Of a stretch of 64,000 nucleotides of DNA, positions 34,971 to 62,684 are shown one piece after another. Under the pieces are notes generated by a model. It was given only the letters and a program-made list of their open reading frames with translations, searched no databases and had not been told where the DNA came from. The stretch covers positions 124,001-188,000 of IMG/VR virus record IMGVR_UViG_3300027782_000027. One strand, 5' to 3'. The first letter of the stretch is position 1, and each line of letters starts with the position of its first letter. The position numbers and the translations under genes were made by a program.

Positions 34971-35975
34971 ATGAGTTTAGTAACAATTAGCAATTTATCG
35001 GGTATTCCTCCTTACCAAGTTTCTGTCTGTGATATCTTTCAGTTTTCTTGTGTTACGGTAACAACAATTTACGATTATATTCCTCCGGCATATTCTTTTT
35101 ATTTACCAAGTGGTTTTAATAATGCTCCGAAAGTATTAATTAAGATTGTCGATTCTACGGGGTGTATTTTTACAAGTGAGTATGAATGTTTAACACCAAC
35201 TCCAACACCGAGTATTACTCCGTCAATTACACCTACGATTTCACTTACACCTTCTAATACTCCGACACCAAGTATTACTCCATCAGTTACTCCAACATTA
35301 TCGATTACTCCGACAATTACTCCGACACCAAGTATTACTCCGTCGATTACACCTACTAATACTTTAACACCAACACCTACTGTGACACCTACTTTAACTC
35401 AAACTCCTGAAGTTGGAAGATATGCTTATTTATTTATTGAACCTTATTCTGGTTCGTCATCTATTGGAAGTTATATGAATTCTATAGGTTCATCATTCTA
35501 TGGATTTACAAATGCTACAAGACCAAGTACTTCGGCATCTACGTTCCAAACGGATATGCAAAACTATGTTAATTTCTCGGGATGGTCAACAGGTTTATTC
35601 CCACAAGTAATAAGACAAACGATACCTCAAACAACGGGAGGACTTGATAGTTATGGTAATCCAAGAATTGCATACAATTTCTTAACAACACTTGTTCCTG
35701 AAAATTATACCCAAAGTAAGGCTTGGTATACTTGGATAATACCAACTAATCTTACAAATAACAAATACCAAATGGAAATTGATTTGGGGATTGTTAATCC
35801 GAATGTGTTTACGAGTTATAAAATGGAACCAACCATTTATCAAAATACGTTTACATATGTTGGTCCAACCATTGCAAATACAACATATAGGGTTTATACA
35901 ACATACCCATCAACTTCGTTTGAGATAGATAATACTTACGACCTTTATTTTAGAGGAAGTAAGGTTGATATATAA
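34971..35975 (+). CDS. Two-domain protein with Pro/Thr/Ser mucin-like linker (putative fibre adaptor)
   Basis: The N-domain is shared with 62418..62684, the linker is (TPTPSITPS)n, and the C-domain is shared with 43547..44755. Confidence 0.7.
35193..35408 (+). repeat. Pro/Thr/Ser low-complexity coding repeat
   Basis: About 70 aa of [15 protein letters not shown]. The DNA unit ccgacaccaagtattactcc recurs. Confidence 0.9.
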
Positions 35976-35984
35976 TTATAGTAA

Positions 35985-36974
35985 ATGAGTTTCCCATATA
36001 AAAATCCAATATCGTCTATCCAACTAAATGGGACACAAAGTGTACCAAGAAACAATACGTATGGCACTACTTTCAGTGTTAACAATACGGGTGGTTACAT
36101 GGAGGTTTTTAGTTTATCTGACCTTTATTATACAATACCAACAGGAACAACGGGAAGTATTGAATATTCGGGTAATACCATTCCTATTGAGTTTACAAAG
36201 GGAACGGGTGCCGCTTGGTCTCCTGATGTAATTACATTAGCTTCAGATAATATTTCATCAGGTAGAAGACGACTTGGTATGTTGGCTTATGTTTATGAGG
36301 TTGACCAAGTTTATCAATATCATATTAATAATTACGAGACGTTATTTAATGCTGCTACGGCTAGTACAGGATGTGCTCAGGTATCTGATTTTGGAACAAC
36401 GATAAATAATAAAACTGCTGCGGGTCAGTCGTTTATTAATTCTTGGACTGCAAATACTATTGAAGATGTAAGTGGTACGACATATAGCACTGCGGTATGG
36501 AGAAAGTTTCCAGCACGTACTGTTAGAGCTTGGGGTTCATTTATTTCTACCGTTAGTCAATACGTAACAAGTACAACGACCGCATATTCAATGAGTGCCG
36601 CAACACAAACATCAGGAAATGGTGTTAGCGTTTCCGCAAATACAAGATTTATTGTTGCAAGTGCGGGGACATACAATTTACAATTTTCTTCTCAATTAGA
36701 GTCAACAGGTGGAGGCGCTGCTCAAACTATGAACATATGGTTGGCAATAAATGGTTTTAATGTTGATAATTCAAACACAGCTATTGTTGGAAATTCTAAT
36801 AATGGAAGAAGTGTTGCGGCATGGAATTTTGTAGAACCATTAAACGCTGGTGATTACATGGAATTAAAGTTTTGGGTTAGTGATATCAGATTAGGATTTG
36901 CATATGATGTAGCACAATCTACTCCGACCAGACCGGCAATTCCATCAGTAATAGTAACGGTAACACAAGTGTAA
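35985..36974 (+). CDS. Short fibre-like protein: N-terminal anchor domain plus C1q/BclA-CTD-like head
   Basis: The N-terminal ~175 aa are paralogous to the N-terminus of the 4766-aa protein. The C-terminus has VASAGTYNLQFSSQL...IWLAING...LNAGDYMEL, a C1q/TNF-like pattern. Confidence 0.65.
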   Translation: MSFPYKNPISSIQLNGTQSVPRNNTYGTTFSVNNTGGYMEVFSLSDLYYTIPTGTTGSIEYSGNTIPIEFTKGTGAAWSPDVITLASDNISSGRRRLGMLAYVYEVDQVYQYHINNYETLFNAATASTGCAQVSDFGTTINNKTAAGQSFINSWTANTIEDVSGTTYSTAVWRKFPARTVRAWGSFISTVSQYVTSTTTAYSMSAATQTSGNGVSVSANTRFIVASAGTYNLQFSSQLESTGGGAAQTMNIWLAINGFNVDNSNTAIVGNSNNGRSVAAWNFVEPLNAGDYMELKFWVSDIRLGFAYDVAQSTPTRPAIPSVIVTVTQV

Positions 36975-36994
36975 AGATATATTTATAATATAAC

Positions 36995-38041
36995 ATGGCA
37001 ACATCAAGACCCTTCGCATATAACACAGGTTCAACAATTACAGGAACAGAACAACTTGGAAGTATTGCTATTGGTACGCCAACAAGTGGTTTCACATCCA
37101 CAGGTTTAAGATGGTGGAGTGGACCTGACGAAGATTTAGGTTATGTTATTGCCCATACAGTACCTTCAGGAACACAACCAAATCCTGTAGGAGTTCCGGC
37201 TTACATCGGTTTTTGGAGAACACCAAGTAAGACAGATAATAACTTTATTAGTTTATCACAGTATGTTTCAAGTTTTACAGGGACAGCGCAAACATTTGCA
37301 AGTACTTCAGCGGCTAAAACATGGTTAAACTCAGCTGGATATTGGACATCTTACTCATCTTCTATCGTTACCTCAGGACTCATATTAAACTATGATATTA
37401 GTAATACATCAAGTTATCCTGGAACAGGAACCACAATTACGGATTTAACAGGTAGTAGTAATGCGACACTATACAACTCTCCGACATACACATCATCAGG
37501 TGGAGGTTATCTAACCTTCAATGGTAGTAATCAATATATAGGAACTAATACCGCATTAGGTTCAAAATTAAACCCGGCTAACTCATCTACCGTTATCTCA
37601 ATCTTTGTATGGGTTTATCCTATGGATAATGGTGTTATTGTACAGGAAATTGGACAAACAACACCAAATACAGGATGGCATGATTCACAGATAGAAATGG
37701 TTGGGGGAACACTTAGGTTTTCTGTATGGCAGAACCAACCTGGTTTTGCGTCAACTATATCTACACCTTTAAACAATTGGTATTATGTTGGATTTACATA
37801 TAACGGAACAAATTTAATTGGTTATGTTAATGGAGTTTCTGCAGTAACTAGTGGGACCATATCAAGAGCCACACCAGGCGCTAATTTATATTATGCGATT
37901 GCACATGATGACGCAACAAATTTAGGTGACGGAACTTTTTCTAATATGAGATTTGGTGGAATGCAAATTTATAACACAGCATTGTCTAATGAAAATGTAT
38001 TAACAAATTATAATGCTCAAAAATCAAGATTTGGATTATAA
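36995..38041 (+). CDS. Virion protein with C-terminal LamG/concanavalin A-like lectin domain
   Basis: GLILNYD...SYPGTG, FNGSNQY, SIFVWVY, NNWYYVGFTYNG...YVNG, IYNTALS...NYNAQKSRFGL. Confidence 0.85.
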   Translation: MATSRPFAYNTGSTITGTEQLGSIAIGTPTSGFTSTGLRWWSGPDEDLGYVIAHTVPSGTQPNPVGVPAYIGFWRTPSKTDNNFISLSQYVSSFTGTAQTFASTSAAKTWLNSAGYWTSYSSSIVTSGLILNYDISNTSSYPGTGTTITDLTGSSNATLYNSPTYTSSGGGYLTFNGSNQYIGTNTALGSKLNPANSSTVISIFVWVYPMDNGVIVQEIGQTTPNTGWHDSQIEMVGGTLRFSVWQNQPGFASTISTPLNNWYYVGFTYNGTNLIGYVNGVSAVTSGTISRATPGANLYYAIAHDDATNLGDGTFSNMRFGGMQIYNTALSNENVLTNYNAQKSRFGL

Positions 38042-38127
38042 AATACAAAACGTATTATTATTTAAACTTATTAATTTATTTCTTTAATTTTTATTTAAAA
38101 TTAATACTTTTTGTGTAAAACATTTAC

Positions 38128-39372
38128 ATGAAAATTTTTATACAAGTTGCTTCTTACAGAGACCCCCAACTAATCCCAACTATACAGTCAGCATTAGAAA
38201 ATGCTAAACGACCTGAAAACTTAGTTTTCGGTATTGCTCGTCAGTATCATCCTGATGATAGTTTTGATAATTTGGACGAATACCGAAACGATGAAAGGTT
38301 TAGAATAATTGATATTCCTTATACAGAATCCAAAGGAGCTTGTTGGGCAAGAAATAAGATACAACAAGTATATCAAAAGGAGTCATATACTCTTCAAATT
38401 GACTCACATATGAGGTTTGCTCAAAATTGGGATGACGAGATGATTAAGATGATTAAACAACTTCAAAAGAAAGGATATAAGAAACCATTATTAACAGGTT
38501 ATGTTTCATCCTTTGACCCTGACAATGACCCTAACCTACGTGTGAACGAACCTTGGAGAATGGCGTTTGATAGATTTATTCCTGAAGGTGCGGTTTTCTT
38601 TTTACCTGAGACAATTCCTGGTTGGCAAAATTTAACTGAACCTGTTACCGCAAGGTTCTACTCGGCTCACTTTTGTTTTACTCTTGGTAAATTTGCTAAA
38701 GAAGTTCAACACGACCCTGAGTTCTATTTTCATGGTGAAGAGATTTCAATTGCTGCAAGAGCTTACACTCATGGATATGATTTATTTCACCCACATAAAG
38801 TTTTGATTTGGCATGAATATACAAGAAAGGGAAGAACCAAACAATGGGATGACGATAAAGAATGGGTTGATAAGAATAATTTTGCTCACAAAAAAAATCG
38901 TTCTCTATTCGGTATGGATGATGAGGAAGATATGAAACACGGAAAGTATGGTTTTGGTAAAGTTAGAAGTTTAAGAGACTATGAAAAATATTCAGGACTT
39001 TTATTTTCAAAGAGAGCTGTTCAACAATACACATTAGATAAGGGTTATCCACCAAATCCAAATAACTTCAATTCAGAAGAAGAATGGTTAAAATCATTTA
39101 CATCAGTATTCAAACATTGTATTGATATTGGGTTTACTCAAGTACCTGAAAAAGATTATGACTTTTGGGTTGTTGCATTCCATAATGAATTAGATGAAAC
39201 CATTTACAGACAAGATGCTGATAAAGGTGAAGTTGATAGAATGTTAAGAGACCCTGATGGTTATTGTAAAGTTTGGAGAGAGTTCTTAACTGATTCAAAA
39301 CCTAAATATTGGGTGGTTTGGCCTCACTCGGAATCTAAAGGATGGTGTGATAGAATAACAGGAAATTTATAA
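38128..39372 (+). CDS. GT60-family (Pfam GlcNAc-type) polypeptide/hydroxyproline N-acetylglucosaminyltransferase-like protein
   Basis: IFIQVASYRDP, SKGACWAR, LQIDSHMRFAQNWD (DxH), FHGEEI..AARAYTHGYDLFHP and WHEY follow the motif series of Skp1/polypeptide GlcNAc-transferases. Confidence 0.82.
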   Translation: MKIFIQVASYRDPQLIPTIQSALENAKRPENLVFGIARQYHPDDSFDNLDEYRNDERFRIIDIPYTESKGACWARNKIQQVYQKESYTLQIDSHMRFAQNWDDEMIKMIKQLQKKGYKKPLLTGYVSSFDPDNDPNLRVNEPWRMAFDRFIPEGAVFFLPETIPGWQNLTEPVTARFYSAHFCFTLGKFAKEVQHDPEFYFHGEEISIAARAYTHGYDLFHPHKVLIWHEYTRKGRTKQWDDDKEWVDKNNFAHKKNRSLFGMDDEEDMKHGKYGFGKVRSLRDYEKYSGLLFSKRAVQQYTLDKGYPPNPNNFNSEEEWLKSFTSVFKHCIDIGFTQVPEKDYDFWVVAFHNELDETIYRQDADKGEVDRMLRDPDGYCKVWREFLTDSKPKYWVVWPHSESKGWCDRITGNL

Positions 39373-39375
39373 GAT

Positions 39376-40086
39376 ATGAAATTTACATTTACTACTTTTT
39401 GTTTTGGTGAAAGATATTATAACCAAGTTAATAGATTTATTGGTGATATCGTAGAATCAGATTATAAAACAAATTTGGTTGTCATTACCGATGACCCAAG
39501 TAAGATTAATAATCAAGAATTTGTTCACGCCTTCAACATTAATGATTTTAATCCAAATTATTTGGAGTATGCTAAAAACTACTATGACTTTGATTTTTCA
39601 GTTAAAAGATATTCGTTAAGAGCAGCTTTAAGTATTGGTTTTACTAAAATCATATTAGTTGATTGTGATATGAGAGTTAACCCATCTTTCTTTAATGAAG
39701 AAAAGATTTTGGGGGCGTTTGATGAGAATTGTTTATCAGGGCCAGTTACCTATAATTTTCACGAACAAGTTCATACTAATAGTGAATTAGGTAGACGATT
39801 ACTTGAGTATGAGAAATACTTTAATCATGAGGTTGATAAAGATAAGTTGGAGGTTATGCCTGAAGATTGTATTCAATACTTGAGTATTGATGAAGATAAG
39901 TTTAATGGTTTTTTAGATACTTGGGACAAGTGTATTGAATATAAAAAAGAAAAAGGTTTGAGAAACATACCCGCTGGTAACATAGATGAGATGTGTTTTT
40001 CAGCATTATTTAATGGAATTGAAATAAAAAATAACGCTTATAAAGCATCAAATATAATATACGCAGAACATGACAAATGGTACTAA
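39376..40086 (+). CDS. Putative GT-A-fold glycosyltransferase
   Basis: FTTFCFGERY, VVITDD, KRYSL and IILVDCD (DxD). It lies within the GT cluster. Confidence 0.6.
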   Translation: MKFTFTTFCFGERYYNQVNRFIGDIVESDYKTNLVVITDDPSKINNQEFVHAFNINDFNPNYLEYAKNYYDFDFSVKRYSLRAALSIGFTKIILVDCDMRVNPSFFNEEKILGAFDENCLSGPVTYNFHEQVHTNSELGRRLLEYEKYFNHEVDKDKLEVMPEDCIQYLSIDEDKFNGFLDTWDKCIEYKKEKGLRNIPAGNIDEMCFSALFNGIEIKNNAYKASNIIYAEHDKWY

Positions 40087-40924
40087 AATAATTTCGGCAA
40101 TTTATGAATTAAAATATGTTGAAGGGATTAATAGTGAGAGATATAAAAATTTTCCATTATTGGTCGCGACGATTAAAAATATAATTTATCCTGAATATCG
40201 TTACGTAATTTATACTGACCAAAATTCATATGATAAATTTAATTTAAAGTATGAATTTAATTTTCCAAATGTTGAATTCAAGTTTAAAGAATTAAATACA
40301 TCTGAAACTTGTGAATTAATTGATAGAATTAGAACTCAAGAATTATCAGGTGGAATTAACTATGATAGAATTTATTGTGTAAACAATTATTTGGAAGTTG
40401 TTTTAAATAAACTTAAATTCTTAATTGATGAGTCACATGATTGTGATAATATCTTTTGGATTGATGCCGGATTGATTGGAACATCTTGTCACGATGGGTG
40501 GAGAGATTACATGGCTCCGTTAATTAATTCAAAAAACTTTTTGGATAAGGTGGTTGATAAGATAAACCAACATGGGTTTATTCATTTAAAAGGTAATTCA
40601 ATTGTTATGAATTATGAAACAGTTGCTAAGTTTAATGACCTATTTGGTGTTGAATTAAAGGTTGTTCCTGGATGTCTATTTGGTGGAACATCAGAAAAAG
40701 TTAGACATATTTTAGACGAATATTTAGACATTTTTAATCAATACTTAACTACACATAACCAACTTATTAGTGAACAAGAGGTTCTTACTGCTATTACAGG
40801 TAAACATTCTGATAAATGTTATGCTTTTGAGTTTGGAGATTGGTTAGACTTACAAAGAGCATTTTTAGACATTTTAGACATTTATGATGAAACAAAATAT
40901 GTAAGGGAGAAATGTTATGTTTAG
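40070..40924 (+). CDS. HtrL/YibB (WlaTC)-like putative glycosyltransferase
   Basis: YVIYTD, KLKFL, FWIDAGL, GCLFGG, SEQEVL. Confidence 0.65.
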   Translation: MTNGTKIISAIYELKYVEGINSERYKNFPLLVATIKNIIYPEYRYVIYTDQNSYDKFNLKYEFNFPNVEFKFKELNTSETCELIDRIRTQELSGGINYDRIYCVNNYLEVVLNKLKFLIDESHDCDNIFWIDAGLIGTSCHDGWRDYMAPLINSKNFLDKVVDKINQHGFIHLKGNSIVMNYETVAKFNDLFGVELKVVPGCLFGGTSEKVRHILDEYLDIFNQYLTTHNQLISEQEVLTAITGKHSDKCYAFEFGDWLDLQRAFLDILDIYDETKYVREKCYV

Positions 40925-41480
40925 TCTTAATATTGTTTGTACTTCTATTGGAAGGGAAACCCTACCAAGATTGATTGAGTCATTCAAAGACCAATTAGAT
41001 ACAACTGATATTTTTACAATAATATCTGATATTAATCACGAATTTGTTTCAGAAGTATTATCAAGATATGAGTTTAAATTCAAAGTTAATCACATATTAA
41101 ATCAAGGCGAACAAAAGTGGAAATACGGACATCCATTAATTAATGAAAACATTAATTCATTAGAAGGTGATTTTATAATGTTTGCCGATGATGATGATAG
41201 ATACACTGAAGAAGCATTTAAAGTAATCAAAGAAACTATTAAAGATAAAAACAAATTATACATATTCAAACACAATTGGTTAGGTGATATTAATTGGAGA
41301 TTAAAAGATTTTACAAGAGGTAATGTAGGTAAATGTATGGGAGTGATTCCAAATACACATAATTTACCGATGTTCCAAGAAGATGTTTTTGGAGATGTTA
41401 TTTTTTATGAAGAGATAGGTAAAGTGTTTGAAAGTGAATTTGTTGATTACATAATCTATAAAGTTAGACATACGGAATGA
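40917..41480 (+). CDS. GT2-like glycosyltransferase
   Basis: TSIGRETLPRLIES, GDFIMFADDDDRY, GDVIF. Confidence 0.72.
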   Translation: MFSLNIVCTSIGRETLPRLIESFKDQLDTTDIFTIISDINHEFVSEVLSRYEFKFKVNHILNQGEQKWKYGHPLINENINSLEGDFIMFADDDDRYTEEAFKVIKETIKDKNKLYIFKHNWLGDINWRLKDFTRGNVGKCMGVIPNTHNLPMFQEDVFGDVIFYEEIGKVFESEFVDYIIYKVRHTE

Positions 41481-43147
41481 GTAATATTACATTAGTTACA
41501 GGATTGTGGAATATTGGAAGGGAAAATCTTGAAGAAGGTTGGTCTCGTTCTTTTTCACATTATTTAGAAAAATTTGAACAACTATTAAAAGTTGAAGAAA
41601 ACTTAATAATTTTTGGTGAAAAGGAATTGGAGGAATTTGTTTGGGAAAGAAGAGACCAAAGTAATACCCAATTTATTTTAAGAGATAAGAGTTGGTTTGT
41701 TGAAAATGACTTTTACAATAAAATACAAGAAATTAGAAATAATCCTGAATGGTATAATCAATCAGGGTGGTTAAAAGAATCAACACAAGGTAGATTGGAA
41801 ATATACAATCCACTTGTTATGTCAAAAATGTTTATATTAAATGATGCAAGGATTTTTGATAAGTTTAATTCAGAGTTTTTATTTTGGATTGACGCTGGAC
41901 TTACAAATACTGTTCATCCTGGATATTTTACACATGATAAGGTTTTAAATAATTTAAGTAAGTATATTGATAAGTTTACATTTGTTTGTTTTCCATACGA
42001 TGCAAGTAATGAGATACATGGATTTTCATACCCAAAGATTAATCAGTGGGCTGAAGATGATGTAAAGAAAGTTGCTCGTGGTGGGTTCTTTGGTGGGCCG
42101 AAAGAAACCATATCACAGATGAATGGTGAATACTATAACCTATTGAATGATACACTATCAAGTGGGTACATGGGAACGGAAGAGTCAATATTTTCAATAA
42201 TGGTTTATAAGTTAAGTGAATACATAAATTATTTTGAAATTGAATATAATGGTTTATTTGGGAAATTCTTTGAGGATTTAAAAGATGATGTTTTAGTTAA
42301 AAAGACAGAGTTTGTTAAAATTCAAAATGATTTAGATATAGATAAAGTTGCGTTGTATGTAATAACATTCAATTCACCAAAACAATTTGAAACATTAATT
42401 AAATCTATGATTGAATATGATAGGGATTTCTTGGACAAACCAAAGAAATTTTTATTGGATAACTCTACAGATTTATCAACAACTGAAGAATACTTAAGAC
42501 TTTGTAAAGAATATGACTTTGAACATATTAAAAAAGATAACATAGGCATTACAGGTGGAAGACAATGGACTGCTGAACACTTTGATGAAACAGGGTTGGA
42601 CTATATGTTATTCTTTGAAGATGATATGTTTTTTTATTCAAAAAAAAATGAAGTATGTAGAAATGGGTTCAACAGATATGTGAGTAATCTATATCAAAAA
42701 AGTTTAGAGATAGTTAACAAAGAAAACTTTGATTTTTTAAAATTAAATTTTTCAGAGTTTTATGGTGATAATAGTACTCAGTGGAGTTGGTATAATGTTC
42801 CACAAAATTTCAGAGAACAACATTGGCCAAAAAACCCAAGATTACCTCAACATGGTTTAGACCCGAACGCTCCAAAAACAAAATTTAACGAGATAAAAAC
42901 ACATAAGGGTTTACCATATGCTTCAGGTGAAATTTATTTGTGTAACTGGCCTATAATCCTTTCAAAAAGTGGGAGTTATAAATGTTATTTGGAGACAAAA
43001 TATCAACACCCATATGAGCAAACTTTAATGTCTCACAACTTCCAAAACACAATTAAAGGTAAGTTAAAACCAGGTATTTTATTACTCACTCCTACCGAAC
43101 ATGATAGATTTGAACATTATGATAGTAATTTAAGAAAAGAATGTTGA
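41477..43147 (+). CDS. Two-domain putative glycosyltransferase (HtrL/YibB-like plus GT-A domain)
   Basis: N-domain: TLVTGLWNIGR, SKMFIL, FWIDAGL, GGFFGG, TEESIF. C-domain: LYVITFN, LLDNS, NIGITGGR, YMLFFEDDM. Confidence 0.7.
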   Translation: MSNITLVTGLWNIGRENLEEGWSRSFSHYLEKFEQLLKVEENLIIFGEKELEEFVWERRDQSNTQFILRDKSWFVENDFYNKIQEIRNNPEWYNQSGWLKESTQGRLEIYNPLVMSKMFILNDARIFDKFNSEFLFWIDAGLTNTVHPGYFTHDKVLNNLSKYIDKFTFVCFPYDASNEIHGFSYPKINQWAEDDVKKVARGGFFGGPKETISQMNGEYYNLLNDTLSSGYMGTEESIFSIMVYKLSEYINYFEIEYNGLFGKFFEDLKDDVLVKKTEFVKIQNDLDIDKVALYVITFNSPKQFETLIKSMIEYDRDFLDKPKKFLLDNSTDLSTTEEYLRLCKEYDFEHIKKDNIGITGGRQWTAEHFDETGLDYMLFFEDDMFFYSKKNEVCRNGFNRYVSNLYQKSLEIVNKENFDFLKLNFSEFYGDNSTQWSWYNVPQNFREQHWPKNPRLPQHGLDPNAPKTKFNEIKTHKGLPYASGEIYLCNWPIILSKSGSYKCYLETKYQHPYEQTLMSHNFQNTIKGKLKPGILLLTPTEHDRFEHYDSNLRKEC

Positions 43148-43545: not shown

Positions 43546-43546
43546 T

Positions 43547-56700: not shown

Positions 56701-59085
56701 GGGTCTAGTGGTTCTTCAGGTTCTAGTGGTAGTGCTGGAAGTTCTGGTACATCAGGTGCTAATGGTAGTTCAGGAACATCTGGCTCAAGCGGTTCATCTG
56801 GCTCAAGTGGAAGTAGTGGTAGTTCTGGTTCAGTTGGAACATCAGGTTCTAGTGGAAGTAGTGGTAGTTCAGGGTCTTCAGGAAGTACTGGTTCAAGAGG
56901 AACAAGCGGTTCTTCAGGAACATCGGGAAGCTCAGGTTCAAGTGGTTCATCAGGTACTTCAGGTTCTAACGGAAGTTCAGGAACATCAGGAAGTGCTGGT
57001 TCAAGTGGTAGTTCAGGTTCATCAGGTTCAAGTGGAACATCAGGTTCTAATGGTAGCTCTGGTACATCAGGTAGTTCTGGTTCAAGTGGTAGTAGTGGTT
57101 CTAGCGGTAGTGCTGGTACTTCAGGTTCAGTAGGGACAAGTGGCTCTTCAGGAAGTGCGGGTAGTTCAGGGTCAAGTGGAAATACAGGCTCTTCGGGTAC
57201 TAGCGGTTCATCAGGAACATCAGGTTCTTCTGGCTCAAGTGGCTCGTCAGGGTCTGGTGGAAGCTCAGGTACATCGGGTAGTAGTGGAACATCAGGGTCT
57301 TCAGGCTCAAGTGGAAGTTCAGGTAGTACAGGTTCATCGGGTTCATCTGGTATTACAGGTTCTTCAGGAACTAGTGGTAGTTCAGGTACATCAGGAAGTT
57401 CGGGTTCATCAGGTAGTAGTGGAAGCACTGGCTCAAGTGGTACTGGAGGTTCTTCAGGAACATCAGGTTCTTCTGGTTCAAGTGGAAGCTCAGGTTCTTC
57501 GGGTAATAGCGGTTCATCGGGAACTTCTGGGTCAAGTGGAACATCAGGTTCTTCTGGCTCTTCAGGTAGTTCTGGGTCTAGCGGAAGTGCTGGCTCAAGT
57601 GGTAGTTCAGGTTCATCGGGTATTACTGGAAGTAGTGGAACAAGTGGTTCTTCTGGCTCAAGCGGAAGTTCAGGAACATCGGGTTCTTCGGGTACTTCAG
57701 GGTCAAGTGGTTCTTCAGGAAGTAGCGGAAGTTCGGGTAATACAGGTTCTTCTGGAACTAGCGGTTCATCAGGTAGTGCTGGTTCAAGCGGAAGTTCGGG
57801 TAATACAGGTTCTTCTGGAACTAGCGGTTCATCAGGTAGTGCTGGTTCAAGCGGAAGTTCGGGTAATACAGGTTCTTCGGGTACAAGTGGTAGTTCTGGA
57901 ACATCGGGGTCAACAGGTTCTTCAGGAAGTTCTGGGATTACTGGTTCCTCAGGTACTTCTGGTTCAGGTTCTGCTGGTTCATCAGGTTCTAGCGGAAGTG
58001 GGTCATCAGGAACAAGTGGATTAGATGGTATAAGTGGAACATCTGGCTCAAGTGGTATTACTGGTTCATCAGGTACTTCAGGTTCTGGCTCATCAGGAAG
58101 TTCAGGGTCTAGTGGAAGTACGGGTTCGTCAGGAACATCAGGTTCGTCAGGAACATCAGGAAGTTCAGGTTCTAGTGGTAGTTCTGGTTCAAGTGGGAGT
58201 ACTGGTTCAAGAGGAACTTCTGGAAGTCAAGGTAACAAAGGAGGTCTTCAGTATATCTATGGTAATGGAGCCGGTACAGCACCTTCTTCAGGTCAATTTA
58301 GTTATAATGGTGCAGGTTCTTCAGTTTATGATTTGAAATTTAATGTAACAACCGCGGATTCTGCAAATATTAGTGATTATTTTTTCAATTTAGTTGGAAA
58401 AAGTGGGATTGTATATTTGATTTTCAATTTAAATGGTTCAAACAAAATTGATATTTATAGCTTTAATAACGTTTCGGTAAGTGGTAGTGATTATCTTTTT
58501 ACAGGAGCTTTAGATACAAATGCTGGAGATACAACACTTACAACTAGTGATTTATGTGCAATTACCATAATTGTTAATGGAGCATCAGGTGCTAATGGTA
58601 GTTCAGGAACTTCAGGTTCAAGTGGTAGTAGTGGAAGTACTGGTTCAAGAGGAACATCGGGTTCTTCAGGTTCAAGCGGAAGTTCTGGTTCATCAGGGAC
58701 TAGCGGTTCATCAGGAACTTCAGGTTCTAGTGGAAGTTCAGGTTCTAGTGGAAGTTCTGGTTCAAGTGGTTCTTCAGGAACTTCAGGTTCAAGTGGAAGT
58801 ACAGGTTCAAGAGGAACATCTGGAAGCTCAGGAACTAGTGGTACTTCAGGTTCATCGGGTTCTTCGGGTACTTCAGGTTCAAATGGTTCATCTGGTACAA
58901 GTGGTAGTTCAGGTTCATCGGGTAGTTCAGGTTCATCAGGGACTAGCGGTTCATCAGGAAGTTCTGGAATTACTGGCTCTTCAGGAACATCAGGTTCAGG
59001 TTCATCAGGAACTAGTGGAGCTGCGGGCGGAACATTCACATTAGGAATTGTTTACACAACCGCAAACAATTTTAACTTTATATAA
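44785..59085 (+). CDS. Giant Gly-X-Y (G-S/T-S) repeat fibre-like protein, 4766 aa
   Basis: Uninterrupted 14.3-kb ORF with a ~205-aa N-domain, roughly 4300 aa of Gly-X-Y triplets in three blocks, two ~120-aa globular inserts and a short C-terminal tail. Confidence 0.85.
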   Translation: MAIPYQNPISASQITGPFSVARTSPYGTNFNVLNVGGWQEAAYLTNLGLIFSGQGQQQLSVNNIPININIGNGTFSPTYLTLNSDNFSSGRRRLGMIVWVNETETAYQYQIDNYNDLWDAAVSANSVTQLSYETIVKNNTPEGQAFINAWTGSTIEGVSGVTRANARWRVFAQGTELTGGTYFSGTSTLELYNSDGTVISVTGITASGSNGSSGTSGSSGSSGSSGSSGSSGTSGSNGSSGSSGTSGTSGTSGSTGTSGSSGSVGTSGSSGLSGVDGTNGTSGSSGSVGTSGTSGSSGSSGTGGTSGTSGTSGSTGTSGSSGSVGTSGTSGSSGSSGSVGTSGSSGSAGTSGTSGSSGSSGTSGTSGTGGTSGSSGSVGTSGTSGTSGSSGTSGSSGSSGSSGSSGSSGSSGTSGSTGTSGSSGTSGTSGSSGSAGSSGSSGSVGTSGSSGSSGSSGSSGTSGSSGSSGSTGSSGSSGITGSSGTSGSSGTSGSSGSSGSSGSSGSSGSSGSTGSSGTSGTSGTSGTSGSSGSTGTSGSTGTSGSTGTSGSSGSSGSSGSSGLTGSSGTSGSSGTSGSSGSSGSSGSSGSTGSSGTSGSSGTSGSSGSSGSSGSSGSVGTSGTSGSSGSSGSSGSVGTSGTSGSSGSSGSSGNTGSSGTSGSSGTSGSSGSSGSSGSSGSSGSSGSSGSVGTSGTSGSSGSSGSSGVNGSSGTSGSSGTSGSSGSSGSSGSSGSSGTSGSSGSSGSSGSTGSSGSAGTSGSVGTSGSSGSSGSSGSTGSSGTSGSSGSVGTSGSSGSVGTSGSSGSTGSSGSSGSTGSSGTSGSSGTSGTSGSSGSSGSVGTSGSSGSVGTSGSSGSVGTSGTSGSSGSTGSSGSSGSSGSVGTSGSSGTSGSTGTSGTSGSSGSSGSSGSSGSSGTSGTSGSVGTSGSSGSSGSTGTSGSSGSSGSSGSSGTSGSSGSVGTSGTSGTSGSSGSSGSAGTSGSVGTSGTSGSSGSSGSSGSTGSSGTSGTSGTSGSSGSSGSAGSSGTSGSSGSTGSSGSTGTSGSSGTSGSVGTSGTSGSSGSVGTSGTSGSSGSVGTSGSSGTTGTSGTSGSSGSSGSVGTSGTSGTSGTSGSSGSSGNSGSSGTSGTSGSTGSSGSSGSSGSVGTSGSSGSSGSSGSTGSSGSTGTSGSSGTSGSSGTSGTSGTSGSSGSVGTSGTSGSSGSVGTSGTSGSSGSVGTSGTSGSSGSSGSVGTSGSSGSVGTSGTSGSSGSSGSSGVSGSSGSSGISGSSGTSGTSGTSGSSGSTGTSGSSGSAGSSGNSGTSGSSGSVGTSGTSGSSGSVGTSGTSGSSGSSGNSGTSGTSGSSGSVGTSGTSGTSGSSGSSGSSGSVGTSGTSGSSGSVGTSGSSGSTGTSGSSGSAGSSGNSGTSGTSGSSGSSGSSGSTGTSGSSGSTGTSGSSGSVGTSGTSGTSGTSGSSGSVGTSGTSGSVGTSGTSGSSGSSGSSGSSGSSGSAGSSGTSGSTGSSGSSGSSGSVGTSGSSGSTGTSGSSGSVGTSGSSGSTGTSGTSGSSGSVGTSGTSGTSGSSGSSGTSGSSGSTGTSGSSGSVGTSGTSGSSGSTGTSGSAGSSGSSGSSGSSGSSGSVGTSGTSGSSGSTGTSGTSGSSGSSGTGGSSGSSGSTGTSGTSGSVGTSGTSGSSGSVGTSGTSGSSGSVGTSGSSGSSGTSGTSGSSGSVGTSGTSGSSGSVGTSGTSGTSGTSGSSGSVGTSGSSGSVGTSGTSGTSGSSGSVGTSGTSGSSGSYGSSGSSGSTGTSGTSGSSGTTGSSGSSGSSGSSGSVGTSGSSGSSGTSGYSGSSGSSGSSGSAGTSGVNGSSGTSGSSGSSGSSGSSGSSGTSGSSGSTGSSGSSGSSGSTGTSGSSGSTGTSGTSGSVGTSGSSGSSGSSGSSGSVGTSGTSGSSGSTGSSGSSGTSGSTGTSGTSGSSGSVGTSGTSGTSGSSGSSGSSGTSGSSGSVGTSGTSGSSGSSGSSGISGSSGSSGSTGTSGTSGSSGSVGTSGSSGSSGSVGTSGTSGTSGTSGSSGSSGSTGSSGSSGTSGSSGSSGSAGSSGSSGSTGTSGTSGSTGSSGSSGTSGSSGSSGSVGTSGTAGTSGSTGSSGSSGSSGSVGTSGTSGSSGSSGSAGSSGTSGSSGTSGTSGSSGSTGSSGTSGSSGSVGTSGSSGSTGTSGSSGSSGTSGSSGSTGSSGSSGSAGSSGSTGSSGTSGSSGSVGTSGTSGSSGSVGTSGSSGSSGSSGSVGTSGSSGSSGSSGSSGSSGSVGTSGSSGSTGTSGSSGSTGSSGSSGSTGTSGTSGSSGSTGTSGTSGSSGSVGTSGTSGSSGSVGTSGTSGSSGSVGTSGTSGSSGSVGTSGSSGTSGSSGSSGSSGSTGTSGSSGTSGSSGSTGTSGSAGSSGSSGSSGSSGSTGTSGSSGSSGSTGSSGSSGTSGSSGTSGSSGNSGSSGTSGTSGTSGSSGSSGSAGSSGTSGSVGTSGTSGSSGSTGSSGSSGTSGTSGSSGSSGSSGSSGTSGSSGSTGSSGTSGSSGTSGTSGSSGSSGSSGSTGTSGSSGSSGTSGSSGSSGSSGSSGSSGSSGSTGSRGTSGTSGTSGSSGTSGSNGTSGSSGSSGSSGSSGSGGTSGSSGLSGVDGTNGTSGSSGTSGTSGSSGSSGSSGSSGSVGTSGTSGSSGSSGSAGSSGSSGSSGTSGANGSSGSSGSSGSSGTSGSSGSSGSAGSSGSSGSVGTSGSSGTSGSSGSSGSSGSSGSSGSSGSAGTSGSSGSAGTSGSSGSSGSAGSSGSSGVTGSSGTSGSSGSSGSSGSSGSVGTSGSSGTSGSSGSSGSSGSSGSSGSTGSSGSSGSTGSSGTSGTSGSSGSSGSTGTSGSSGSSGSAGTSGSSGSTGSSGSSGSAGSSGSVGTSGTSGSSGSSGSSGSTGSSGTSGSSGSSGSSGSTGSSGSSGTSGSVGSSGTSGSSGSSGSAGSSGSTGTSGSSGSVGTSGTSGSSGSSGSSGSVGTSGTSGSSGSSGSSGTSGSVGTSGSSGTSGSSGSSGSSGSSGSSGSTGSSGTSGSTGSSGSSGSTGSSGTSGSSGSSGSSGTSGTSGSSGSSGSSGSVGTSGTSGSSGSSGSTGSSGSAGTSGSSGSVGTSGSSGSSGSSGSSGSAGSAGTSGTSGSSGSSGSSGSSGSAGTSGANGSSGTSGTSGSSGSSGSSGSSGSVGTSGSSGTSGTSGTSGSSGSAGSSGSAGSSGSSGSSGTSGANGSSGTSGSSGSSGSSGSSGSAGSSGTSGSSGSSGSTGSSGSSGTSGSSGSSGTSGSSGSSGSSGSVGTSGSSGTSGSSGSSGSSGSAGSSGTSGTSGSSGTSGSSGSSGSSGSTGSSGSTGTSGSSGSSGSSGSVGTSGSSGSAGTSGSSGSSGSSGSSGSSGSTGSRGTSGTSGSSGTSGTSGTSGSSGSSGSAGSSGTSGANGSSGTSGTSGSSGSSGSSGSAGSSGSTGTSGSSGSSGTSGSSGSSGSSGSSGSAGSSGSSGTSGANGSYGTSGTSGSSGSSGSAGSSGSVGTSGSSGSSGSAGSSGSTGSSGSSGSSGTSGANGSSGTSGSSGSSGSSGSSGSSGSVGTSGSSGSSGSSGSSGSTGSSGTSGTSGSSGSSGSSGSSGSAGSSGTSGANGSSGTSGSSGSSGSTGSSGSSGTSGANGSSGTSGSSGSSGSSGTAGSSGLSGNDSSNSGRWRYNGTGTTPAATFFQTDSTTISSITNVYINIDDINSTSYASWFSGIDTIQALGNTVYLQITQVGSNNIIGIWDVAGITVTGSVYRWIFKGNIVANGTLSSTEYTISWVFNGLNGSSGTSGSSGTSGSSGSSGSSGSSGNTGSSGTSGSSGTSGSSGSAGSSGSSGNTGSSGTSGSSGSSGSVGTSGTSGTSGTSGSSGSSGSAGTSGSSGTSGSSGSSGSSGNTGSSGSSGTSGSSGSSGSTGSSGSSGTSGSSGSSGSSGSSGSAGSSGTSGANGSSGTSGSSGSSGSSGSSGSSGSVGTSGSSGSSGSSGSSGSTGSRGTSGSSGTSGSSGSSGSSGTSGSNGSSGTSGSAGSSGSSGSSGSSGTSGSNGSSGTSGSSGSSGSSGSSGSAGTSGSVGTSGSSGSAGSSGSSGNTGSSGTSGSSGTSGSSGSSGSSGSGGSSGTSGSSGTSGSSGSSGSSGSTGSSGSSGITGSSGTSGSSGTSGSSGSSGSSGSTGSSGTGGSSGTSGSSGSSGSSGSSGNSGSSGTSGSSGTSGSSGSSGSSGSSGSAGSSGSSGSSGITGSSGTSGSSGSSGSSGTSGSSGTSGSSGSSGSSGSSGNTGSSGTSGSSGSAGSSGSSGNTGSSGTSGSSGSAGSSGSSGNTGSSGTSGSSGTSGSTGSSGSSGITGSSGTSGSGSAGSSGSSGSGSSGTSGLDGISGTSGSSGITGSSGTSGSGSSGSSGSSGSTGSSGTSGSSGTSGSSGSSGSSGSSGSTGSRGTSGSQGNKGGLQYIYGNGAGTAPSSGQFSYNGAGSSVYDLKFNVTTADSANISDYFFNLVGKSGIVYLIFNLNGSNKIDIYSFNNVSVSGSDYLFTGALDTNAGDTTLTTSDLCAITIIVNGASGANGSSGTSGSSGSSGSTGSRGTSGSSGSSGSSGSSGTSGSSGTSGSSGSSGSSGSSGSSGSSGTSGSSGSTGSRGTSGSSGTSGTSGSSGSSGTSGSNGSSGTSGSSGSSGSSGSSGTSGSSGSSGITGSSGTSGSGSSGTSGAAGGTFTLGIVYTTANNFNFI
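45406..59025 (+). repeat. Degenerate 9-bp-period coding repeat (GSS/GTS/GSV/GST/GSA triplets)
   Basis: A GGN codon occurs at every third codon, with interruptions at about 55909-56271 and 58231-58581. Confidence 0.97.
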
Positions 59086-59121
59086 TATTTATAATAAACT
59101 AAATTAAACTAATATAATAAT

Positions 59122-59726: not shown

Positions 59727-59732
59727 AAAATT

Positions 59733-60629
59733 ATGATTGACTATTACAATTTAGCTGACAATCAATATAAAAATCAAGTATATACCGGGTCTATAGGTAC
59801 TAATACTACTTTCATGGTTTATTATTGGATTAAACCAAGAGGTGTTACTATGGTACATATTACTGCTATTGGTGCTGGAGGTGGTGGAGGTGGTGGTAAT
59901 TCTTCTGCGAGTACTGCGGCTTCAGGTGGTTCTGGTGGTGGTTCAGGAGCTATTACAAGATTAACAATCCCCGCTATTTTTTTACCCGACCAACTTAGAA
60001 TAATTGTTGCCGCTGGTGGTTCTGGAGGAACTACAGGTGGAGGTAATACTGCAGCTAATACTTTTGTTGAAGTTGCTAGAGGTTCTGCGGTTGCGGCTAC
60101 CTATGTGTTACAAGCTAACGGTGGTGGTGGAGGTAACGTAGGTGCTGCGGGAGCAGCTTCTGCGGGTGGTGGAGCCGGAGCTATAGGTGTTCAAACTAAT
60201 GCAGTATATCAGGCTTTAGGTACGTTTTCAGTTATTGCAGGTCAAGCGGGTGCTGCAGGTGCAAATGGTGCCGTAGGGGGTACAATAACAATTAACGGTA
60301 ATGCTACAACAGTATCAGGAGGTGCCGCTGGAGGTGGGAAAAGTGCAGCTAATACCTCATTTGGTGGTGGTAATATCAATCCTATTGGGCAAATACCTAC
60401 AGGTAATGGAGGAAGCGCGGGTGGAACTAATAATGGTGATACAGGAACTTATACGTTTAATGGATTTTATAGTGCAGGAGGTGCTGGTGGAGGTGCTTTT
60501 GCAACAGGTACTGCGGGCAGAGGAGGTGATGGTGGACCTGGCAGCGGTGGAGGTGGTGGTGGTTCAGGAGTAACTGGAGGTAATGGAGGTAATGGTGGAC
60601 CCGGTATGGTAATAATAACATGTTGGTAA
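59733..60629 (+). CDS. Glycine-rich domain protein, paralog 1
   Basis: WIKPRGVTMVHITAIGAGGGGGGG...GGNGGPGMVIITCW, a polyglycine-rich phage tail domain pattern. Confidence 0.8.
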   Translation: MIDYYNLADNQYKNQVYTGSIGTNTTFMVYYWIKPRGVTMVHITAIGAGGGGGGGNSSASTAASGGSGGGSGAITRLTIPAIFLPDQLRIIVAAGGSGGTTGGGNTAANTFVEVARGSAVAATYVLQANGGGGGNVGAAGAASAGGGAGAIGVQTNAVYQALGTFSVIAGQAGAAGANGAVGGTITINGNATTVSGGAAGGGKSAANTSFGGGNINPIGQIPTGNGGSAGGTNNGDTGTYTFNGFYSAGGAGGGAFATGTAGRGGDGGPGSGGGGGGSGVTGGNGGNGGPGMVIITCW

Positions 60630-60641
60630 TAAGTATAAAAT

Positions 60642-61520
60642 ATGAGTTTTGTATATGATTTAGCGGACACAAGTTATAAGACCGCAGTGTTTTATCAGTC
60701 AGGTAGTTGGATAAAACCACAAGGTATAACCATGATATCTATCACGGCTATTGGTGCTGGTGGTGGAGGTAGTGGAGGGGCTACTAATACATCTGCTAAC
60801 GCAAGGTCAGGAGGTGGTGGAGGTGGTTCAGGTAGTATTACAAGATTGACTATTCCTGAAATGTTTATAACTGATTCATTAATTATAAATATTGGTACGG
60901 GTGGTAACGGAGGTGCTGCTGGTTTAGGAAATGGAGGTAGTGGAGGGTCAACAATTGTTGACATGCCTGTTCCGGGTAATGGTGACATATATACAAGAGT
61001 AATAGTTGCTACTGGAGGGTCAGGAGCAGTTGGTGCTACAGGAGGAGTGGCCGCAGGTGCAACTGACGTAGCCGCGGCATTATATTCGACATTAGGTATT
61101 TGGATGGCTATTGGAGGACAAGGAGGTGGTAACGGATTAACTGCCGCAGGTACTTCGGTAACATATGGAGCGACTATTGGACTACCAATTACCTCAGGTG
61201 CGGGAGGTGGTGGTATGGCCGCGGCAGGTACCACACCAACAAATGGTGGAGAAATTACAGGCGCAGGGTTTGTGTCTACAAACCCTGGTGGTATTTCAGG
61301 AGCTACAGGGAATAGAGGGGTTTATTCATTAACACCTTTTTATTCTACAGGAGGAAGTGGAGGTGGAGGTGGAGGGACAACTCCAGTTTCAGGTGGTGCA
61401 GGAGGTGATGGAAATATTGGATGTGGTGGTGGCGGTGGTGGAGGTGGTACTTCACCCACAGGTGTTGGTGGCATTGGAGGAAAAGGTGGAGACGGTTTAG
61501 TAATAATACAATGTTGGTAA
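60642..61520 (+). CDS. Glycine-rich domain protein, paralog 2
   Basis: WIKPQGITMISITAIGAGGGGSGG...GGKGGDGLVIIQCW. Confidence 0.8.
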   Translation: MSFVYDLADTSYKTAVFYQSGSWIKPQGITMISITAIGAGGGGSGGATNTSANARSGGGGGGSGSITRLTIPEMFITDSLIINIGTGGNGGAAGLGNGGSGGSTIVDMPVPGNGDIYTRVIVATGGSGAVGATGGVAAGATDVAAALYSTLGIWMAIGGQGGGNGLTAAGTSVTYGATIGLPITSGAGGGGMAAAGTTPTNGGEITGAGFVSTNPGGISGATGNRGVYSLTPFYSTGGSGGGGGGTTPVSGGAGGDGNIGCGGGGGGGGTSPTGVGGIGGKGGDGLVIIQCW

Positions 61521-61529
61521 TATAATAAT

Positions 61530-62408
61530 ATGGATTTTCAATATAATTTAACAAACAACTCTCATAAGGTTTTCATTTACAACAGTGATGGTACTCACAC
61601 ATGTCAATTACCTAAAGGTGTGTCTATGGTATATGTTATTACAATAAGTGCTGGTGGAGGTGGTGGTGGAGGATTTACATCCGCCAGTGGAGCCGCTGGA
61701 GGAGGAGGTGGTGGAGGTACAGGAGCAGTCAACCGTATCATCATTCCAAAAATATTTTTGACAGATAGTTTAACAGTTGTAGTTGGTGCCGGAGGTGCCG
61801 GAGGTGCTGCAAATACTATTGGTTCTAACGGAGGGGCAACATCTGTAGGATTAAATGTGACAACTGGTGGAGGTGCTCAATCATTTTTATTAAGTATTAC
61901 TGCTGGTGGTGGAGGAGGAAACCCCGGAACTGTGGGGGCTGGTGGTACGGGAGGTGCTGCTGGAGCTACGTCATCGGTAAACAATATGGCTATGACAGCT
62001 TTAGGTGAGTTTGTATTAAGAGCTGGTATTGCGGGTGGTGATGGTAATGCGACTGGAGCTCCATTGGCTGGTATATACGGGTCAGGTATTGTTCCTTTAT
62101 CCGCTGGTAGAGGTGGTGCGGGTCGTACAGCAGGTAACGTTCCAGCCGCTGGTGGTTCTATTTCAGGTAGAGGATTTGTACAAGATGTTCCAGGAGGTAC
62201 TTCAGGTGGTGGTACAGGTGTTGATGGTATGTTTATGCGGAAACCTTTTGTATCACTCGGTGGTACAGGTGGTGGTTCATCAACAGGTGTGGGTGGTAAC
62301 GGTGGTAATGGAGGACCTGGTAGCGGTGGAGGCGGTGGTGGTGCTGGAACAACAGGAGGAACAGGAGGACGTGGTGGTAATGGCTTAGTAATTATAACTT
62401 GTTGGTAA
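61530..62408 (+). CDS. Glycine-rich domain protein, paralog 3
   Basis: LPKGVSMVYVITISAGGGGGGG...GGRGGNGLVIITCW. Confidence 0.8.
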   Translation: MDFQYNLTNNSHKVFIYNSDGTHTCQLPKGVSMVYVITISAGGGGGGGFTSASGAAGGGGGGGTGAVNRIIIPKIFLTDSLTVVVGAGGAGGAANTIGSNGGATSVGLNVTTGGGAQSFLLSITAGGGGGNPGTVGAGGTGGAAGATSSVNNMAMTALGEFVLRAGIAGGDGNATGAPLAGIYGSGIVPLSAGRGGAGRTAGNVPAAGGSISGRGFVQDVPGGTSGGGTGVDGMFMRKPFVSLGGTGGGSSTGVGGNGGNGGPGSGGGGGGAGTTGGTGGRGGNGLVIITCW

Positions 62409-62417
62409 TTATATAAT

Positions 62418-62684
62418 ATGACATACGTTGAAATATCAAATATAAACGGAACACCACCTTTTCAAATTTACTTATGTGATTTTGCGGGTAATAATTGTTC
62501 TTTGGTTCAAACTGAATACGACCCCGTTTATTGGCCAGTTATTGTTTATCTTCCATCGTCTTTGATTGGGTCAAGTCAGGTGATGTGTAAAGTTATTGAT
62601 GGAAATTCTTGTGAGACTTTTAATATTTTAGTTTGTCCAAGTCCTACACCAACACCGACACCTACCCCAACACCCACTCCTTAA
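62418..62684 (+). CDS. Small protein: N-domain paralogous to 34971..35975 plus terminal (TP)n tail
   Basis: ISNINGTPPFQIYLCD...KVIDGNSC aligns with [16 protein letters not shown]...KIVDSTGC. It ends CPSPTPTPTPTPTPTP. Confidence 0.7.
   Translation: MTYVEISNINGTPPFQIYLCDFAGNNCSLVQTEYDPVYWPVIVYLPSSLIGSSQVMCKVIDGNSCETFNILVCPSPTPTPTPTPTPTP

Follow-up and report, generated by a model that had tools for sequence, protein, structure and literature searches.

A GT60 glycosyltransferase cassette among fibre genes of a freshwater jumbo phage: a candidate system for O-glycosylation of (S/T)P tracts

The window studied here is a 64,000-nucleotide stretch of IMG/VR virus record IMGVR_UViG_3300027782_000027 (positions 124,001 to 188,000 of that record, renumbered from 1). 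It carries a cassette of five glycosyltransferase (GT)-type genes (38128–43147) set among fibre-type genes, some of which encode Ser/Thr-Pro tracts, written (S/T)P or TP tracts below. We propose with moderate confidence, from sequence comparison, that the cassette provides cytoplasmic, phage-encoded O-glycosylation of the (S/T)P tracts in fibre and adaptor proteins of the phage itself. In the searchable literature we found GT60-type enzymes described neither in phages nor in bacteria, and no account of a link between GT60 and TP tracts. Genes are named by the coordinate of their first nucleotide, and the cassette is as follows:

38128..39372, + strand: GT60-family glycosyltransferase (PF11397) by profile, with a GT27-like predicted fold and the conserved motif D92-S93-H94; soluble; proposed initiating polypeptide N-acetylhexosamine (HexNAc)-transferase
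39376..40086, + strand: GT-A glycosyltransferase, 236 aa, GT6-like predicted fold, D96-x-D98 conserved; variable, putative elongating enzyme
40070..40924, + strand: putative GT (a weak call), 284 aa, paralogue of the HtrL-like half of 41477
40917..41480, + strand: GT2-like protein, 187 aa, weak profile match; variable, putative elongating enzyme
41477..43147, + strand: two-domain glycosyltransferase, 556 aa, with an HtrL_YibB N-terminal half and a GT-A-like C-terminal half; proposed core-extending enzyme

Assignment of the lead enzyme to GT60

The product of 38128 scores 232.7 bits with the Pfam profile PF11397 (cutoff 21; E = 1.1e-68), and its match to phrog_24687 has an E-value of 2e-168. 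An AlphaFold (AF2) model built on an alignment of its homologues had a pLDDT of 96.1, and the 35 best Foldseek matches of that model in the Protein Data Bank (PDB) were all GT27 polypeptide GalNAc-transferases (ppGalNAc-Ts; E = 5e-11 to 4e-9, probability 1.0). Across 48 diverse homologues, D92 and H94 are invariant and S93 is at least 90% conserved; DxH is the metal-binding motif of GT27 and GT60. On profile, predicted fold and motif we are confident that 38128 is a member of GT60/PF11397, and the initial annotation, which had named it as such from the sequence, thus agrees with both Pfam and the nearest solved folds. GT60 comprises the alpha-GlcNAc-transferases with which protists begin mucin-type O-glycosylation of polypeptides (PMC8724618). 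The reaction typical of the family moves alpha-GlcNAc from UDP-GlcNAc to Ser, Thr or Hyp.

GT60 differs from GT27 in having no ricin-type lectin domain at the C-terminus. Beyond the catalytic region of 38128, both the alignment and the model show a conserved, beta-rich C-terminal domain of ~95 residues (aa ~320–414). PDB sequence searches with 38128, 41477 and the distal head of the fibre-type protein 35985 returned no match. At least 7374 protein clusters (at 90% identity) match 38128 at E <= 1e-5. Some GT60 family members of 1300–2461 aa carry two to four tandem GT60 domains (P0122, P0123, P0125 and others).

The other cassette enzymes

The initial annotation had counted six catalytic-looking domains in the five genes. 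Three of these are well founded, namely GT60, 39376 and the HtrL-like half of 41477, and the other three are weaker. Gene 39376 has no Pfam match, but its model (pLDDT 93.0) has a GT-A fold nearest to GT6, the family of alpha1,3-Gal/GalNAc transferases that includes BoGT6a. The N-terminal half of 41477 matches PF09612 (HtrL_YibB) at E = 8.7e-13. Its C-terminal half reaches only 15.7 bits against TAGT (PF20691), where the cutoff is 27.5, with homologues at best at E = 4e-5; it also has a sub-threshold match (E = 1e-4) to phrog_842, the group of the T-even beta-glucosyl-HMC-alpha-glucosyltransferase. The GT2 match of 40917 lies under the Pfam threshold in the window copy (E = 4e-4) and reaches E = 4e-6 at best among homologues. 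The call for 40070 comes solely from its 28% paralogy to the HtrL half of 41477; it is also weakly similar to ORF332 of the cultured phage XacN1.

The cassette GTs had been described as free of signal or membrane anchors, and hydropathy of the window proteins bears this out: no transmembrane or signal segment was detected in any of them, and the highest 19-residue Kyte-Doolittle mean is 1.21. The enzymes are thus predicted to be soluble and cytoplasmic.

TP tracts in the flanking genes

The genes on either side of the cassette are listed below; with their SprB repeats, ConA-like domain and matches to virion structural proteins, they are of virion type.

34971..35975, + strand: adaptor/fibre-type protein, 334 aa, in which an (S/T)P tract of ~70 aa follows an N-terminal SprB-like domain and precedes a C-terminal domain; candidate glycan acceptor
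35985..36974, + strand: fibre-type protein, 329 aa, with an N-terminal ~185 aa paralogous to the N-terminus of the giant 44785, and a distal head
36995..38041, + strand: ConA-like/Laminin_G_3 protein, 348 aa, with relatives among the virion structural proteins of phages of Synechococcus and Flavobacterium
43177..43545, + strand: domain protein, 122 aa, the same domain as the N-terminus of TP-tract proteins
43520..44755, + strand: TP-tract protein whose N-terminal domain is 43177-like and whose (S/T)P tract precedes a C-terminal domain; candidate glycan acceptor
44785..59085, + strand: collagen-like giant, 4766 aa, with an anchor (aa 1–207) and 1431 Gly-X-Y triplets; possible second acceptor
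59733..62408, + strand: three tandem Gly-rich paralogues (PF21722, Gly_rich_2), ~30% Gly, not regular Gly-X-Y
62418..62684, + strand: open reading frame (ORF) of 88 aa whose N-terminal domain is 34971-like and which ends in a (TP)n tract

All three proteins that had been said to carry TP tracts do so: 34971 (aa ~75–145, nt 35181–35411), 43520 (aa ~153–197, nt 43961–44074) and 62418 at its C-terminus. These three have the dense Ser/Thr/Pro tracts typical of mucin-type acceptors; the repeat of the giant does not. The flanking genes had also been read as paralogous pairs. Three pairings held, namely the N-termini of 35985 and 44785 (42%, E = 6e-39), those of 34971 and 62418 (37%, E = 5e-10), and 43177 with the N-terminus of 43520 (30%, E = 4e-12), and a pairing of the C-terminal domains of 34971 and 43520 is only marginal (E = 0.07).

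Some details of these genes deserve mention. The TTG start listed for 43520 is probably wrong: an ATG at 43547, just past the stop of 43177, gives MEWFIKK..., which aligns with the MEFFINK... start of 43177. ORF 62418 stops at 62684 right after its (TP)n tract, and another frame with SprB repeats opens at ~62731 and runs past the end of the window; this arrangement could represent two genes, a sequencing frameshift or slippage at the ACNCCN repeat. The three Gly-rich paralogues all end in ..G(L/M)VII(T/Q)CW.

The distal head of 35985 (aa 212–329) matches small phage proteins that depositors named cerebellin- or C1q-like. We treat a C1q-like head as a lead only, given that the matches are weak, their names come from depositors and the heads of orthologues are unrelated. 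The unrelated heads suggest swapping of receptor-binding domains, as judged from sequence. The orthologues in three related loci (L005–L007) contain 42–98 Gly-X-Y(S/T) triplets, forming stalks of variable length between anchor and head.

Conservation of the cassette in viral metagenomes

At least 579 IMG/VR contigs contain a relative of the window's GT60, and we analysed the best 80 of them (74–100% identity). Both the GT60 gene and a 41477-like gene are present in 80/80 loci, and a 43177-like gene follows the cassette in 71/80. Between the two conserved GT genes lie 1 to 8 ORFs (74 loci), which fall into 72 clusters. Pfam matches of these middle genes cover 36 families and include GT25, GT10, GT11, GT2, GT34, GT7 and a PLOD-type GT, together with UDP-galactopyranose mutase, a nucleotidyltransferase, FkbM and rhamnosyl O-methyltransferases, a carbamoyltransferase and a sulfotransferase. 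Such a repertoire is that of an oligosaccharide undergoing diversification. The 25 most frequent of the 36 families include neither a flippase nor a polymerase nor a polyprenyl-phosphate transferase.

TP tracts, called by a composition window, are concentrated at these loci. Around GT60 we counted 122 TP-tract ORFs in 1.45 Mb, spread over 65/80 loci, versus 0 in 0.90 Mb around the helicase gene of the same clade, which served as control. The end of a TP-tract gene lies no more than 3 kb upstream of GT60 in 42/63 loci, at a median distance of 88 nt. Co-localisation in phages is by itself no proof of a substrate relationship.

Related loci in cellular genomes

A second set of 80 loci, from cellular genomes, provides evidence that is independent of phage gene order. 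GT60-like genes with 37–50% identity occur in chromosomes of at least five phyla (Acidobacteriota, Gemmatimonadota, Verrucomicrobiota, Bacteroidota and Proteobacteria), and in ~35 of the 80 loci a 41477-like gene lies beside the GT60-like gene. At no fewer than 11 loci the cassette adjoins a gene whose product is hardly more than a leader joined to a long (TP)n tract. Of 18 long tracts on the same strand, 7 are no further than 1 kb from the GT60 gene, versus 14.6% expected (binomial p = 0.01).

Read by eye, eight of the 11 (TP)n proteins begin with a twin-arginine-type motif (RRQFV, RRKLLQ or similar) followed by a hydrophobic stretch; they come from several phyla (L193, L197, L202, L213, L214, L217, L222 and L243). 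A soluble enzyme encoded beside a substrate of the twin-arginine translocation (Tat) type would fit modification in the cytoplasm followed by export. Some of the leader-(TP)n proteins also carry a conserved W-x-KP-x-I...AQ segment and a C-terminal anchor. Two others of the 11 contain a PqqD domain (Pfam E = 6e-6), normally the peptide-binding element of pathways for ribosomally synthesised and post-translationally modified peptides (RiPPs); in both (Gemmatimonadaceae; L176:7215-7937 and L181:7314-7952) the PqqD-type domain precedes a (TP)n tail, and the genes end 49–64 nt before the GT60-like gene. At L209 the abutting (TP)n ORF has no clear leader or start in the reading used.

The cassette in XacN1-like cultured phages

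Among cultured phages, GT60 was found in only four: XacN1, Xoo-sp13, RAS14 and CM1. These share with the window the GT60 gene, a weak 40070-like gene and a 41477-like gene near the baseplate module, and a giant gene with (S/T)P tracts nearby. In XacN1 and RAS14 the cassette is 41–47% identical to that of the window, as compared with ~25% for backbone genes. It is headed by GT60 and also holds a carbamoyltransferase, a weak 40070-like gene (23–27%) and a full-length homologue of 41477 (41–43%). The XacN1-like phages differ in having Proteobacteria hosts, high GC content, the extra carbamoyltransferase and no collagen-like giant; their cassette lies on the strand opposite the structural genes, whereas that of the window is on the + strand together with all other long ORFs.

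The baseplate-adjacent giants of XacN1 and RAS14 (3100–3300 aa) have (S/T)P tracts near the C-terminus. We considered whether they were Ser/Thr repeat proteins and rejected this, since apart from these short tracts their composition is ordinary. In Ralstonia phage RsoM2USA, which has no cassette, the homologue of this giant stops where the TP tract would begin, and no TP tract was found within 25 kb; this is a single case. XacN1 virions contain at least two glycoprotein bands by Schiff (PAS) staining, and the authors of that study proposed ORF334, the GT60 homologue, and ORF328 as the glycosylating enzymes (PMC5852040).

Proposed mechanism

The pathway that we infer, including its acceptor, its sugar, the order of its steps and the incorporation of its products into virions, would decorate Ser/Thr of Pro-rich linkers before virion assembly and would need no lipid carrier. 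The soluble GT-A enzyme 38128, with its DxH metal site, would begin by placing a sugar on Thr/Ser of the (S/T)P tracts; this is probably a HexNAc, with a UDP-sugar as donor. The two-domain enzyme 41477, which is universally co-inherited, would then add the next one or two core sugars. Swappable tailoring enzymes would finish a strain-specific glycan; in the window these would be the GT6-like 39376, the HtrL-like 40070 and the GT2-like 40917, and in relatives fucosyl- and galactosyl-transferases, galactofuranose (Galf) synthesis, and O-methyl-, carbamoyl- and sulfo-transferases. The finished glycoproteins would be built into the virion. The initial annotation had named shielding, slowed sedimentation and bait for glycan-foraging hosts among possible roles of such glycans; these roles, like alpha-GlcNAc as the sugar, are conjectural.

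The initial annotation had asked whether GT60 genes occur next to (GSS/GTS)n and (TP)n genes across phage genomes. For (S/T)P tracts the linkage held in the phage loci, in the XacN1-like phages and in the 11 bacterial loci. For Gly-X-Y repeats it did not, as described below for the giant.

Several observations weigh against the proposed pathway. The gene directly upstream of GT60 in the window, 36995, has no TP tract. The 80 phage loci include many near-duplicates, so that their counts are not independent, and the cassette sits in a fibre module, a setting in which TP linkers could be frequent in any case. An adjacent TP-tract gene occurs in only 11 of the 80 cellular loci. The glycoprotein bands of XacN1 were never tied to particular proteins (PMC5852040), and some family names within the cassette and its relatives come from other pathways, as discussed next.

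Alternative substrates

Soluble GTs could instead act, at the cytoplasmic face of the membrane, on lipid-linked precursors of lipopolysaccharide (LPS) core or capsule in the infected Bacteroidota cell, for example in blocking superinfection or aiding release, with the adjacency to fibre genes being incidental. HtrL_YibB and GT25 were named from LPS-core loci, the hypervariable GT content resembles that of O-antigen loci, and a survey of jumbo phages reads variable GT clusters as modification of envelope polysaccharide (PMC7824862). We nevertheless consider envelope remodelling improbable. GT60/GT27-type enzymes act on peptides, the bacterial gene pair adjoins genes for (TP)n proteins and not only polysaccharide loci, and XacN1 virions bear glycoproteins. 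Gtr-like, Wzx/Wzy and polyprenyl-phosphate transferase genes are absent from the window and from the 25 most frequent middle-gene families. Seroconversion of the Gtr type uses a membrane flippase and an integral-membrane GT, and the cassette encodes no hydrophobic segments.

The targets might also be other parts of the virion, for instance capsid, sheath or decoration proteins, with the TP tracts and the giant serving as plain unglycosylated linkers. This is how virion glycosylation works in mycobacteriophages, where capsid and tail-tube C-termini are modified (Freeman 2023, as cited in PMC12619734), and the unassigned XacN1 bands would be compatible with it. We give this reading a small chance, as it leaves two things unexplained: the leader-(TP)n genes beside the cassette in bacteria, which have no capsid, and the absence of the TP tract from the XacN1-type giant in the relative that has no cassette.

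We regard both the LPS and the DNA alternatives as unlikely, and the latter, in which the GTs build glycans on hydroxymethylated phage DNA bases against restriction, as highly improbable: the lead enzyme is of peptide-acceptor type, every TAGT match is under the Pfam threshold, no hydroxymethylase or TET/JBP gene was found in the window, and fucosyl-, sulfo- and carbamoyl-transferases and Galf synthesis are, to our knowledge, not features of DNA-glycan systems. What speaks for it is the weak likeness of the C-terminal half of 41477 to DNA-base GTs (TAGT and phrog_842), itself a further point against our proposal, and the variety of glycans that phage GTs are known to build on DNA (Pyle 2024, as cited in PMC12619734). 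For XacN1, the DNA could be digested and mapped with BssHII, NaeI and SpeI, and the annotation includes an ordinary thymidylate synthase, a dCMP deaminase and DHFR and no hydroxymethylase (PMC5852040), all of which count against modified bases.

The collagen-like giant

The gene for the giant, 44785, begins 1.6 kb downstream of the end of the cassette on the same strand. As had been noted, it encodes 4766 aa with a repeat of about 4300 aa that is roughly 60% Ser/Thr; we measured 60% Ser+Thr over 4281 aa of repeat and 58% overall. Its reading as a mucin-type tract had to be given up, for the repeat is strictly Gly-X-Y and almost free of Pro. A 500-aa piece matches PF01391 (Collagen) at E = 4.8e-72, and the longest uninterrupted run covers 1168 of the 1431 triplets, a total within the range of ~2000 triplets reached by prokaryotic collagen-like proteins. 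The X position is Ser in 953 and Thr in 428 triplets (Ser/Thr in 97%), and the Y position is Ser in 1144 (80%), Thr in 106, Val in 87 and Ala in 49. Non-repeat inserts occur at aa 3712–3828 and 4489–4598, the latter being a C-terminal domain with no family match.

The repeat is old and diverged at the DNA level. Of its 60-mers, 10,420/10,453 are distinct, no exact repeat exceeds 75 nt, all four Gly codons are used and the Ser codons are mixed; these features rule out an assembly artefact or a recent amplification. Within the long run Gly is never replaced. Diverged DNA with constant Gly therefore speaks for selection at the protein level on the every-third-Gly register. Minus-strand ORFs opposite the giant (45327–49760, 1477 aa; 50118–54161, 1347 aa) are by-products of the codon composition of the repeat and not genes.

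If triple-helical, the giant would be ~1.2 micrometres long. Collagen-type triple helices are trimers whose folding starts from a trimerisation domain. Long triple helices are usually stabilised by Pro/Hyp or by Lys-Glu/Asp salt bridges, and (Gly-Pro-Thr)10 becomes triple-helical only once its Thr residues are glycosylated (PMC11923368). The giant has neither of the usual stabilisers, with 1 Pro and 19 charged residues in the 4281 aa. Because both are missing and the cassette lies so close, folding that depends on glycans is an attractive idea: by analogy, glycans could stabilise a collagen-type triple helix here. A tentative suggestion, to which we give somewhat less than even weight, is that the (Gly-Ser/Thr-Ser)n stalk is a further substrate of the GT60 enzyme or of a sister enzyme.

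Three findings count against this extension to the giant. Its repeat is Pro-free, while known acceptors of GT27 and GT60 contain Pro. Its Thr lies mostly at X and not at Y. Gly-X-Y(S/T) genes occur near the cassette in only ~5/80 phage loci, which belong to one subclade; we therefore rejected them as general companions of GT60 and conclude that the cassette did not evolve for the giant. A reverse search from the giant repeat retrieved only two other Gly-X-Ser giants, one beside a GT fusion and one with no GT nearby, a sample too small for a conclusion. The former, a 2639-aa protein on an unrelated 147-kb phage contig (L247:10001-20823), lies ~750 nt upstream of the fusion gene, whose 717-aa product combines GT2, methyltransferase and GT17 domains.

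Phage and host setting

All long ORFs of the 64-kb window lie on the + strand, and the coordinates of the cassette and fibre ORFs were confirmed. The window also encodes a DnaB-type helicase, a UvsX-like recombinase, a gp32-like protein, both ribonucleotide reductase (RNR) subunits and baseplate-wedge proteins, and the phage is therefore of the myovirus type. IMG/VR contigs of this phage and its relatives reach 322 kb, which makes them jumbo phages. The GC content is ~30% and climbs to 48% within the giant gene. SprB repeats occur in ORF 32784 and in the last ORF of the window, and the closest matches in genome collections are metagenome-assembled genomes (MAGs) of Saprospiraceae, Lewinellaceae, Cytophagaceae and Chitinophagia. 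Together, these sequence matches point to a freshwater Bacteroidota host. A search of cultured phages for near-identical DNA found none. Pfam gave no match for two further very large ORFs, 1856–8053 (2065 aa) and 19645–25236 (1863 aa), of which the latter comes after the baseplate-wedge gene, the same placement as the XacN1 giant protein.

Comparison with known glycosylation systems

The closest enzymatic parallel is with GT60 of protists (Dictyostelium, Trypanosoma cruzi) and GT27 of animals. The window enzyme shares with them a GT-A fold closest to GT27 and the DxH motif, and with GT60 also PF11397, and the TP tracts encoded beside the cassette resemble mucin-domain acceptors. Protist and animal enzymes are type II membrane proteins of the Golgi, whereas 38128 is viral or prokaryotic and predicted to be soluble and cytoplasmic; the cassette thus lacks the membrane-anchored enzymes of the secretory pathway that characterise mucin-type O-glycosylation. 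It also differs in its extra ~95-aa C-terminal beta domain and in being coupled to a two-domain, HtrL/TAGT-like GT.

Among phages, the mycobacteriophages likewise glycosylate their own structural proteins in the cytoplasm, with glycans that vary between related phages (Freeman 2023, as cited in PMC12619734). Their acceptors, according to the same citation, are the C-termini of capsid and tail-tube proteins, whereas here TP linkers of fibre-type proteins are proposed, and the host phylum differs. Chlorovirus PBCV-1 and mimivirus also encode soluble GTs that build unusual, methylated, strain-variable virion glycans without host machinery (as cited in PMC5852040). These are viruses of eukaryotes; the glycans of PBCV-1 are N-linked, and the collagen glycosylation of mimivirus is on hydroxylysine. 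A 2025 paper on freshwater Bacteroidota jumbo phages describes four core GT groups of unassigned function (PMC12619734).

For the giant, the best comparison is with BclA proteins. In Clostridioides difficile, SgtA is encoded beside bclA3 and places O-GlcNAc on Thr of the collagen-like repeat, and also on Ser peptides, using UDP-GlcNAc and Mn2+ (PMC7157674). Like BclA3/SgtA and Bacillus BclA, the window has a Gly-X-Y filament with an N-terminal anchor encoded beside a soluble GT-A enzyme, and a C1q-like head is possible in its paralogue 35985. The repeats differ in that BclA has Gly-Pro-Thr with Thr at Y, while the giant has no Pro in its typical triplet, Ser at Y (1144/1431) and Thr mostly at X. 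SgtA is a GT2 enzyme with a TPR, whereas the window enzyme is GT60. BclA has tens to about a hundred triplets, and the giant has 1431. A dedicated GT beside a collagen-like gene, as in BclA/SgtA, is present in the window, yet at only ~5/80 related loci.

Biological meaning

Phage-encoded glycosylation of virions has been shown in few systems. Glycans on fibres would affect host range, stability and recognition, and it is an abundant clade of environmental phages that carries this cassette. The combination of a conserved initiator with hypervariable tailoring genes gives the impression of a glycan arms race. In bacteria, the gene pair beside leader-(TP)n genes offers a hypothesis for the function of bacterial PF11397 and HtrL_YibB proteins, and these loci also suggest export of glycoproteins through the Tat pathway. 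A still wider picture is doubtful but worth stating: a widespread prokaryotic mucin-type O-glycosylation in which a soluble GT60-like initiator and an HtrL/GT-A two-domain partner act in the cytoplasm on (S/T)P tracts of phage fibres and, in bacteria of several phyla, of (TP)n surface proteins that are then exported through Tat, together with a ~1.2-micrometre (Gly-Ser/Thr-Ser)1431 triple helix stabilised by glycans in this lineage. With neither Pro nor charge pairs to support it, the giant would be a natural test of O-glycans as the sole stabiliser of a triple helix of such length.

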